From contig NC_068984.1 of assembly GCF_001194135.2 (NCBI RefSeq), positions 41,310,044 through 41,364,478 on the forward strand: DNA of 54,435 nt, in the 5' to 3' direction. The notes below the pieces were generated by a model. The model was not told the DNA's origin and ran no database searches. It was given only the letters and a program-made list of their open reading frames with translations. Shown here in pieces: positions 45,850 to 47,058 of the stretch (position 1 is its first letter; every line of letters starts with the position of its first letter). The translations under genes were made by a program, and so were the position numbers. Source of the stretch: Octopus bimaculoides. Its lineage: Eukaryota.

Positions 45850-46113
45850 AGCCGTTGTGCATACCAACACTGTCGAATTCCCAGAATCTGGAAGCTGGAC
45901 AAAATTATAATTGTAAAGCCCAAAGGAATTAACACCACTCAAACCCATTATCCTTGTATGCACATCCTCAAAAATCTTAGAAAGACGAAGCTGACATCAG
46001 AAACCTATGCAGCTTCCCCAGCACGGATTCAGACTACAACATTCAACTACCACTGCTCACAAATCTGCCGCAGAAAATACATGGCAGAAAAAATAAAGAA
46101 ATAATAAAATTCT

Positions 46114-46306
46114 GTTCTATATTTAAGAGATGAGGAATTATGTACATTATTTACATTATTTACAATTGACGGATATTTGTCCTCATCTTGTTTGTTGTTA
46201 GCACAACGTTTCGGCTGATATACCCTCCAGCCTTCATCAGGTGTCTTGGGGAAATTTCGAACCTGAGTTCTTATTCCTAAGGTATTTTTCGATGTTGTTG
46301 TTGTTG

Positions 46307-46372
<66 letters not shown>

Positions 46373-46562
46373 TCACTGCCTGGAATCGAACTCGAAATCT
46401 CGGGGTTTGTAGCCCGCGCTCTTAACCACTACGCCACTACGCCATATGCCCACGGGCATATGGCGTAGTGGTTAAGAGACGCGGGCTACTAACTCCAAGA
46501 TTCCGAGTTCGATTCCAGGTAGTGACCTGAATAATAATAATATCCGTCAATTGTAAATAATG
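46114..46562 (-). mobile_element. Non-autonomous tRNA-headed, hammerhead-bearing palindromic retroelement (Penelope-like tail)
   Basis: 12-bp TSD TAATAAAATTCT at 46102-46113 and 46563-46574; two back-to-back tRNA-like heads; (TAA)n linker; hammerhead motif. Confidence 0.8.
46200..46245 (-). ncRNA. Minimal type I hammerhead ribozyme motif (Penelope-type)
   Basis: Minus strand GACAC CTGATGA A GGCTG-GAGGGTATAT-CAGCC GAAAC GTT GTGCT: core, 5-bp stem II, palindromic AACGTT in place of stem III, short stem I. Confidence 0.75.
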
Positions 46563-47058
46563 TAATAAAATTCTAGCGAACACTATTATTAACAAAGCTT
46601 TCGACTCCATTCCCCGCTACCAACTCATAGAAAACATACTAACCATCACTTTAGGAAACAACTCAAAACACTGGTCAGCAAACGCCCGCGAAGCCTATGT
46701 AGTACACTAGGATAACTCGCCAAGAACTCATAGTCTTTTTAATGGAGTACTACAGGGGACCTTTTTCTCATCCACTGTTTTCAATCTATACGTACATAAC
46801 CATCCCATACATCCAGGAAATGTATAGAAACCTCATACGCAAATGCACAGCACAACTACTTGAAATCTATTTGTTTAATTCACCAAGAAATCTGACTCCA
46901 CAGCAACAGACTTAAAGTAGCACCCACCAAACCTATGTTTCTTATTACTAGCAACAGTTATTACACTCAACAGCATAAACATACCACTCACACAGAAGAC
47001 AAAAATACTTGTGGTTATATACATCATCACAACATTCATGCAGAAGACATAGCTAGAG

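Follow-up and report, generated by a model that had tools for sequence, protein, structure and literature searches.

Short interspersed nuclear elements (SINEs) are defined by their dependence on long interspersed nuclear elements (LINEs), and classes of the Repbase style group them by type of head, with LINE partners. Among the described systems that come closest to the element considered here, the Sm-alpha and Sj-alpha repeats of schistosomes combine an RNA polymerase III (Pol III) promoter with a type-I hammerhead ribozyme (as summarised in PMC6765202). Others are the minimal hammerheads in the pseudo-long terminal repeats (pLTRs) of Penelope-like elements (PLEs; Cervera & de la Pena 2014; Lunse et al. 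2017), PLE insertions and pLTR cassettes mobilised in trans (Arkhipova et al. 2013; Craig et al. 2021), and the metazoan non-LTR retrozymes (Cervera & de la Pena 2020; Li et al. 2026 preprint). We analysed a stretch of 54,435 nucleotides from Octopus bimaculoides (NCBI RefSeq assembly GCF_001194135.2, contig NC_068984.1, positions 41,310,044 to 41,364,478 of the forward strand), hereafter the window, which contains a 449-bp repetitive unit between 46102 and 46574. We consider it probable that this unit is one insertion of an octopus tRNA-headed, Pol III-type SINE, mobilised most likely by a PLE. To judge from its sequence, the 3' module of this SINE is not a LINE tail; it consists of about 1.5 units of a PLE/retrozyme-type repeat with a minimal hammerhead that lacks stem III.

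Compared by description, Sm-alpha and Sj-alpha resemble the octopus unit in being short, non-coding, dispersed repetitive retroposons with a Pol III promoter and a type-I hammerhead. Sm-alpha has a canonical, efficiently cleaving hammerhead and is largely tandem, whereas the octopus unit has a single stem-III-less ribozyme of the PLE type, is dispersed and shows PLE-type inverted arms. The octopus SINEs OK, OR1 and OR2 (Ohshima & Okada 1994), also compared by description, come from the same host group and have tRNA-derived heads, which correspond to its tRNA-like one; a difference is that one of OR1 and OR2 is a CORE-SINE, although two papers disagree on which. Apart from Sm-alpha, the literature that we searched describes no tRNA-headed SINEs with a PLE tail, whether in cephalopods or in other organisms.

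The 449 bp are enclosed by an exact 12-bp direct repeat, TAATAAAATTCT, and form a head-to-head palindrome. A full long arm of 338 nt, read on the minus strand from 46451 to 46114, is separated by 2 nt from an inverted, internally deleted short arm of 109 nt, which runs from 46454 to 46562. In order of position, and with the loci designated L introduced below, the features are these.

46102 to 46113, no strand: left copy of the target-site duplication (TSD), reading TAATAAAATTCT on the plus strand; one half of the exact 12-bp direct repeat, compared with the 3' ends of other copies.
46114 to 46150, minus strand: 37-nt terminal piece of the long arm (ATAATGTACATAATTCCTCATCTCTTAAATATAGAAC), missing from the short arm when the two are compared; it behaves like the optional 'tail' extension of PLEs.
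46114 to 46293, minus strand: 180-nt tail, colinear with about 1.5 units of the tandem hammerhead repeat of L009 (alignment score 150, against 39 ± 6 for shuffles).
46151 to 46177, minus strand: 27-nt tail segment, a perfect inverted repeat (100% complementary) with 46539-46565.
46200 to 46246, minus strand: minimal type-I hammerhead (one descriptor match, 0 in 300 shuffles; traits from PMC4209133).
46294 to 46370, minus strand: (TAA)n(CAA)n linker joining head to tail, from repeat analysis; a degenerate linker occupies the equivalent place in L003, L010 and L005.
46371 to 46451, minus strand: tRNA-like head of the long arm, from a promoter-box scan, with A box at 46444-46434, its duplicate at 46436-46426 and B box at 46392-46382 (Rfam tRNA model, 14.8 bits over 46443-46371).
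46452 to 46453, no strand: the 2-nt palindrome centre, between inverted-repeat arms 46434-46451 and 46454-46471.
46454 to 46562, plus strand: short inverted arm, from inverted repeats and arm alignment, with head (A box 46461-46471, B box 46506-46516), (TAA)4 and the 27-nt tail segment.
46563 to 46574, no strand: right copy of the TSD, the other half of the exact 12-bp direct repeat.

The last two nucleotides of the left TSD, on the element side, may be the element's own 3' end (...GAACAG), and the TSD is therefore given as 10-12 bp. The short arm lacks the 8-nt head duplication described below, the hammerhead region and the last 37 nt, while its 27-nt tail segment is identical to 46151-46177. 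Aligned with each other, the arms show five substitutions and two indels (8 nt and 1 nt), and the short arm has in addition a deletion of about 190 nt. Searches of the 54-kb window with blastn and nhmmer returned no second copy of the unit, the head or the tail. A first-pass annotation of this DNA had described the 449-bp unit within its 12-bp repeat, the (TAA)n/(CAA)n linker and a tail of about 180 nt, all of which we recover, the repeat at 46102-46113 and 46563-46574, the linker at 46370-46294 and the tail at 46293-46114; it spoke of an 'arm' but left the palindromic two-arm structure unstated.

A palindrome in a draft genome may be an artefact of assembly. The window is part of a scaffolded draft with three gaps of N (5166-5439, 25655-26289 and 48920-49233), and inverted structures of the PLE type are known to trouble short-read assemblies. 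The arms differ, however, by the five substitutions, the 8-nt and 1-nt indels and the deletion of about 190 nt, unlike the arms of a palindrome from a chimeric read, and comparable inverted arrangements are found in independent assemblies. We regard an artefact as the least probable of the explanations considered in this work.

The minus strand of the long arm begins at 46451 with GGGCATA, followed by TGGCGTAGTGG. In both arms an A box that matches the consensus TRGCNNAGTGG exactly is located at +8, as in a tRNA, and an 8-nt duplication in the long arm creates a second copy at +16. The B box, AGTTCGATTCC, has one mismatch to the consensus and is located at +53 in the short arm and at +60 in the long arm, where it has been shifted by the 8-nt duplication. 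The boxes stand in the canonical geometry of a tRNA gene promoter, and the A/B pair is unique within the window and was found in none of 200 shuffles. From 46451 to 46110 the minus strand has no run of four T residues, the first TTTT being located at 46109-46106, within the left direct repeat. The tRNA-like head with its two boxes and the absence of a T4 run ahead of the left TSD had both been reported in the first-pass annotation and are confirmed. Given the promoter boxes, we infer that the unit would be transcribed by Pol III.

Around the centre of the palindrome, Rfam scores 46412-46486 on both strands as the precursor of a microRNA (mir-885 at 32.7 bits, E=6.7e-05, and also mir-4599). These matches are the palindrome of two inverted SINE heads. 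Such inverted pairs could yield false microRNA annotations, or real hairpin RNAs, in octopus genomes.

Further copies were sought by way of proteins. The tail is open in one reading frame, and its translation was used to find copies through spurious open reading frames (ORFs). The tail peptide matches an O. bimaculoides protein at 83-90% identity, and an exhaustive protein search with the tail matched 175 cluster representatives; among the best 150 of these, 31 are nearer this tail and 119 are nearer a related family, group B. From the DNA behind the proteins we obtained eight loci that belong to the same family and are independent of one another (L001/L002, L003, L004, L005-L008, L010, L012 and L013). 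In two of them, L003 and L010, the head is followed colinearly by a degenerate (AAT)n/(CAA)n linker and then by the tail, and the O. bimaculoides gene model P0040 starts with MPMGIWHSG, which corresponds to the palindrome centre and head, and continues at the protein level into the ribozyme tail. The first-pass annotation had allowed that head and tail might prove unlinked in other copies; they are linked in these three, twice in DNA and once in protein. The unit thus has the traits of a SINE in being short, non-coding and dispersed, with a fixed head-body-tail order. A protein search with the plus-strand frame of tail and head gave no candidates. Scans for exact patterns were empty in viral contigs and in metagenome contigs, and in the genome collection they returned only L011, which is described below. 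We do not claim an inverted arm upstream of the L010 head, for which the alignment is too weak. P0040 itself, a multi-exon gene model of 132 kb in GCA_001194135.2, has an EF-hand_2 match; its SINE-derived start is either an exonisation of the repeat or an artefact of the gene model.

Since copies of the tail without a head are common (L001, L005, L012, L013), one may ask whether the unit is a chance composite, in which a short tRNA-SINE with a (TAA)n tail received an unrelated 5'-truncated PLE or retrozyme fragment in its microsatellite. Microsatellites are preferred targets of PLEs, and the junction between head and tail is a microsatellite. Headless copies are, however, expected from 5' truncation, and a chance event does not account for the repetition of the head-linker-tail order in L003, L010 and P0040, for the joining of the head to the 27-nt segment of the tail in the short arm, or for the single TSD around the whole unit. 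We therefore consider a composite of this kind highly unlikely.

The hammerhead that the first-pass annotation had placed in the tail is borne out at 46246-46200 on the minus strand, with cleavage predicted between U46205 and G46204. In helix I, AG(A)CAC (46246-46241, with A46244 bulged) pairs with GUGCU (46204-46200), which gives 3 bp, a 1-nt bulge and 2 bp. The core boxes are CUGAUGA at 46240-46234 and GAAA at 46212-46209, together with U16.1 at 46206 and U17 at 46205, and an extra nucleotide, A46233, directly follows CUGAUGA. Helix II has 6 bp, of which five are Watson-Crick and one is G-U (46232-46227 with 46218-46213), and in it G46232 pairs with C46213. C15.2 and G16.2, at 46208-46207, are palindromic and there is no loop of helix III, the sequence A15.1-C-G-U16.1 (ACGU) being self-complementary. 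A descriptor composed of the published traits of PLE minimal hammerheads found one site in the window, this one, and gave no match in 300 dinucleotide shuffles.

Cervera and de la Pena listed traits that emerge for PLE minimal hammerheads beyond the core for which they had searched, and gave lengths of 6-8 bp for helix II and 4-5 bp for helix I (PMC4209133); all of the traits are present in the window motif. The likeness to the pLTR hammerheads comprises the core boxes, the additional nucleotide that separates position 9 from 10.1, the G10.1-C11.1 pair, a long helix II with a short helix I, and the palindromic 15.2/16.2 without loop 3. It extends to genomic arrangement, for the PLE motifs are mostly dispersed and single, with pairs on opposite strands 100-700 bp apart. 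The difference is that dispersed PLE motifs have been interpreted as truncated PLEs, whereas the octopus motif forms the tail of a unit that has a tRNA-like Pol III head of its own.

Majority consensus sequences over the ribozyme, derived from five and from nine copies, are both equal to the window sequence, so that the consensus of the family keeps an intact core. The first-pass annotation had raised the possibility that consensus copies would be found to lack the catalytic core, and this is not what we observe. Old individual copies have lost it, often at its two CpGs, C11.1-G12 and C15.2-G16.2. Both of these are gone from L013 (120-165, where CCGAAACG has become CCAAAACA), while L003 (1640-1680) and L010 (270-310) have lost other positions of the core or the helices. 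The window copy retains both CpGs and therefore looks comparatively young or unmethylated.

Just 3' of GAAAC there is a hairpin, GUUGU-loop-ACAAC (46194-46207, minus strand; about 2625-2640 in L009), with an AUAAC variant in L009 and L011. This hairpin recurs in the related families and, according to the fold predictions, would sequester the cleavage site in competition with helix I. GUUGU/ACAAC was considered as helix III and rejected, because no G16.2-U16.1 follows it.

The origin of the tail is indicated by its alignment with a tandem pair of hammerhead units of about 129 nt in L009. Since this alignment crosses the boundary between units, the tail corresponds to the last ~60 nt of one unit followed by one full unit. 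The (CAA)n tract occupies the place of the preceding unit's UAACAACAAAC stretch, just 3' of its cleavage site, and the 5' boundary of the tail is located within about 30 nt of the cleavage site expected in that unit. Because (CAA)n is found where UAACAACAAAC would be, just past the cleavage site, these relationships suggest, speculatively, that a switch of template, from the 5' end of a hammerhead-processed RNA onto a tRNA-like RNA, gave rise to the SINE. An internal repeat between the 5' part of the tail and its 3' end was rejected, as it did not exceed the shuffles.

Group B, to which L009 belongs, supplied 119 of the best 150 protein matches, many of them with two or three tandem units. In L009 (ENA ERZ21867824, a 205-kb contig, 2400-2850) a B-box-like GCAGGTTCAATCCTCAC lies about 130 nt upstream of the two tandem units of about 129 nt, each of which has an intact minimal hammerhead of the form ACACCTGAAGA-A-GGCTGG...CGGCC-GAAACGTT-GTGG. 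L011 (CBDHDV010000339.1) is filed as 'MAG: Rubritalea sp.', a bacterial metagenome-assembled genome, and contains at ~1620-1730 and 3450-3860 at least four copies of a minimal-hammerhead repeat of eukaryote type, with forward and inverted copies that meet at a palindromic junction. It is probably host invertebrate DNA that contaminates the bacterial assembly.

The homology of the tail to the tandem repeat of L009 is one of the likenesses between the octopus unit and the metazoan non-LTR retrozymes, which are likewise non-coding and hammerhead-bearing, with a proposed dependence on PLEs. The retrozymes, however, form tandem arrays with a canonical type-I hammerhead in each unit and give rise to circular RNAs, whereas the octopus unit is not tandem and combines a Pol III head with one minimal hammerhead, the tandem form being confined to the related L009 family. 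When the unit was examined for tandem repeats with two cleavage sites, a single hammerhead was found, and for this reason it is not a retrozyme. The term 'SINE/retrozyme hybrid', used in the first-pass annotation, is therefore accurate in part: a non-autonomous retroelement in which a Pol III-type head is joined to a Penelope-type hammerhead tail, and in which the two are linked elsewhere, is upheld, but 'retrozyme' is not.

These considerations bear on the possibility of an active ribozyme cycle, in which the hammerhead would cut its own Pol III transcript, perhaps with the formation of a retrozyme-like circle, and would be required for propagation. An intact core in the window copy and in a consensus from a small sample, the tandem organisation of related families with a hammerhead in each unit (L009), a tail boundary ~30 nt or less from the preceding cleavage site, and a hammerhead fold within 1.7 kcal/mol of the minimum free energy (MFE) all count in favour of such a cycle. 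A circle would need two cleavage sites, however, and each unit has a single hammerhead, with no ribozyme in its short arm. Hammerheads of this class need two copies to form helix III and cleave poorly even so (PMC4209133, PMC6765202). A cut would moreover part the promoter head from the 3' end needed by the reverse transcriptase (RT), none of the 5'-truncated copies (L001, L005, L012) begins at the cleavage site, and among 31 relatives the ribozyme-coding positions are conserved no better than their flanks. We conclude that such a cycle is unlikely, and the earlier description of the element as 'self-processed' finds no support, given its single stem-III-less hammerhead, the separation of promoter and 3' end by cleavage, and the absence of copies that start at the cleavage site. 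There is no sign that cleavage is required for the spread of the SINE, and our preferred reading is that the hammerhead was inherited with a PLE-derived 3' module of which it is a part.

The structure of the insertions provides information on the machinery responsible for them. Insertions of PLEs have TSDs of 8-10 bp, an inverted copy beside the 5' end and palindromes at head-to-head junctions, and may have on one end only a 'tail' of 31 bp or of 30-40 bp; PLEs also capture (AAT)n/(AAC)n tracts by template jumps, and pLTRs suffice for mobilisation in trans (PMC3846280, PMC8557442). In the octopus family, an inverted partial copy stands beside the forward copy in four of eight loci (the window, L001/L002, L003 and L012), and one is present also in a related family, in L011. 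The window insertion has a TSD of 10-12 bp, and for L003 there is a candidate of 7 bp. A terminal piece of about 37 nt is found on one end only, in the long arm in the window and in the inverted arm in L003, where the forward arm stops at ...TAAATAATGTGA, the break point of the short arm in the window. The forward copies end in 3' at this short site in three cases (L003, L004 and L013) and at the long site in five, the 37-nt piece being present in the forward copies of L001, L005, L010 and L012. The unit has neither a poly(A) nor a simple-repeat 3' end.

As a whole, the inverted partial copy and the palindromic junction, together with the optional piece of about 37 nt and the TSD of 10-12 bp, favour mobilisation by a PLE, and these scars suggest PLE rather than LINE machinery. 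The Penelope-like RT invoked in the first-pass annotation is in this way supported more strongly than it had been argued there, by insertion scars that are specific to PLEs. The likeness to PLE insertions and to pLTR cassettes includes the short TSD, the 5' inverted copy, the palindromic head-to-head junction, the optional extension of one end (30-40 bp there), the association with (AAT)n/(AAC)n and the sufficiency of pLTRs in trans. Two differences are evident, in that the octopus cargo is a tRNA-like promoter of about 80 nt and not an ORF or a host gene, and in that the octopus inverted copy retains its 5' end and has lost an internal part, where a simple 5' truncation is seen in PLEs.

Another reading is an ordinary tRNA-SINE mobilised by a LINE, with an incidental hammerhead-like motif and inverted arm. 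In octopus genomes SINEs and LINEs of the RTE, CR1 and Dong-R4 types are abundant, an RTE-like RT fragment is located in the same window, and insertions may be partially inverted also by twin priming of the L1 type. Yet the 3' end lacks a poly(A) or simple repeat, the motif is unique relative to shuffles and has PLE-specific traits that extend beyond a search for the bare core, the terminal piece is optional in the manner of PLEs, and the tail is homologous to tandem hammerhead arrays. The inverted arms, present in four of eight loci, repeat the 3' region of the forward arm, and since they duplicate the forward arm's own 3' region we rejected classical L1 twin priming as the main model. Mobilisation by a LINE appears to us improbable. 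A foldback or MITE-like (miniature inverted-repeat transposable element) transposon that moves as DNA has in its favour the perfect 27-bp inverted repeat near both ends and the flanking direct repeat. One arm of this repeat, however, is located 37 nt inside the boundary, the arm lengths, break points and candidate TSD lengths (7 vs 10-12 bp) vary between loci, and the internal Pol III promoter and ribozyme module indicate an RNA intermediate, so that the probability of a foldback element is very low indeed.

A number of observations weigh against the interpretation of the unit as a PLE-mobilised, hammerhead-bearing tRNA-SINE. The window and the fetched loci yielded neither a PLE ORF nor an autonomous PLE whose 3' end or pLTR would match, and the sole RT fragment in the window, at 12481-13225 (plus strand), is RTE-like by eye. 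No empty site, with a single AGAATTTTATTA, was recovered, and a protein search with the flanking ORF gave nothing. The copies available for comparison are few, form a biased sample in that they were found through ORFs, and come from sequencing runs. ARAGORN makes no tRNA call in the head, which reaches 14.8 bits (E=6.7) with the Rfam tRNA model, where the gathering score is 29, and the acceptor and T stems are mostly unpaired by eye; because of the silence of ARAGORN and the Rfam score below gathering, the head is best called tRNA-like by its promoter geometry and not a recognisable tRNA. For the hammerhead, no Rfam model matches at gathering thresholds in the whole window or at E ≤ 10 in 45900-46800, so that the Rfam scan proposed in the first-pass annotation does not register the motif. 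Two intact tandem relatives in L009, used as a control, were likewise missed by the Rfam hammerhead models at E ≤ 1, and the negative result therefore reflects the coverage of the models. Covariation is not significant in nine mostly decayed copies, with 76.8% of cells paired against 75.3% in shuffles; two double-sided changes occur in helices I and II among these copies. Helix I is weak or marginal, and the hammerhead fold, at -11.2 kcal/mol, is 1.7 kcal/mol above the MFE structure, in which the competing GUUGU/ACAAC hairpin hides the cleavage site. When two ribozyme domains were cofolded, the MFE of the dimer was predicted without helix III, and the MFE fold of the whole arm (z = -0.74) is uninformative.

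The RT fragment at 12481-13225 matches Pfam RVT_1 (E=3.5e-12), the frame that follows it is RTE-like by eye, and it is unrelated to the unit. Elsewhere in the window, an ORF at 15053-15226 (minus strand) resembles by eye an exon of a BTB/POZ (SPOP-like) protein, and further (TTA)n microsatellites are located at 33895-33923 and at 54379-54435, the latter running off the end of the window.

To account for a PLE-mobilised SINE of this structure, we propose the following sequence of events. Pol III would transcribe a master copy from the A and B boxes within it. The transcript would begin at the G equivalent to 46451 and extend across linker and tail as far as the first run of T residues in the flanking DNA. 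The scars suggest that a PLE RT with its GIY-YIG nuclease would then recognise the pLTR-like 3' module and nick an AT-rich target, and that cDNA synthesis would be primed at one of two sites, the long 3' end (...TATAGAACAG) or an alternative some 37 nt upstream (...GTAAATAATG). Each DNA strand may in this way gain a copy. Such a mechanism would produce the head-to-head inverted repeat and near-perfect palindromic junction that are seen; in the window these are the full long arm and the internally deleted short arm, with a target duplication of 10-12 bp around them. In the speculative origin by a switch of template from a hammerhead-processed PLE or retrozyme RNA onto a tRNA-like RNA, the (TAA)n(CAA)n tract would have grown at the junction.

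If a tRNA-headed SINE with a Penelope-type tail and Penelope-type scars is what it appears to be, PLEs would be a partner of SINEs outside the Sm-alpha repeat of schistosomes. The 'orphan' minimal hammerheads that have been reported by the thousand, dispersed in animal genomes, would also find an explanation in a SINE driven by PLEs. It would further provide an entry to the poorly understood integration of PLEs, as a small, high-copy substrate with a 5' end that is fixed by the Pol III start. About 8-12% of octopus genomes consists of SINEs, and most of the recently active families are unclassified (PMC13282606). Should the family prove abundant, a part of the octopus-specific SINE expansion, much of which is still 'unclassified SINE', would be PLE-driven. 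Knowing which retrotransposase is responsible affects the annotation of octopus repeats, the dating of expansions and the reading of hairpin-forming SINE pairs that mimic microRNA precursors. As a tentative extension, which we regard as possible rather than probable, octopus genomes, and given the L009 and L011 families probably those of other molluscs, may be home to a class of tRNA-headed SINEs, driven by Pol III, that parasitise PLEs and not LINEs and that would have been born when a PLE RT switched from the 5' end of a hammerhead-processed PLE or retrozyme RNA onto a tRNA-like RNA.

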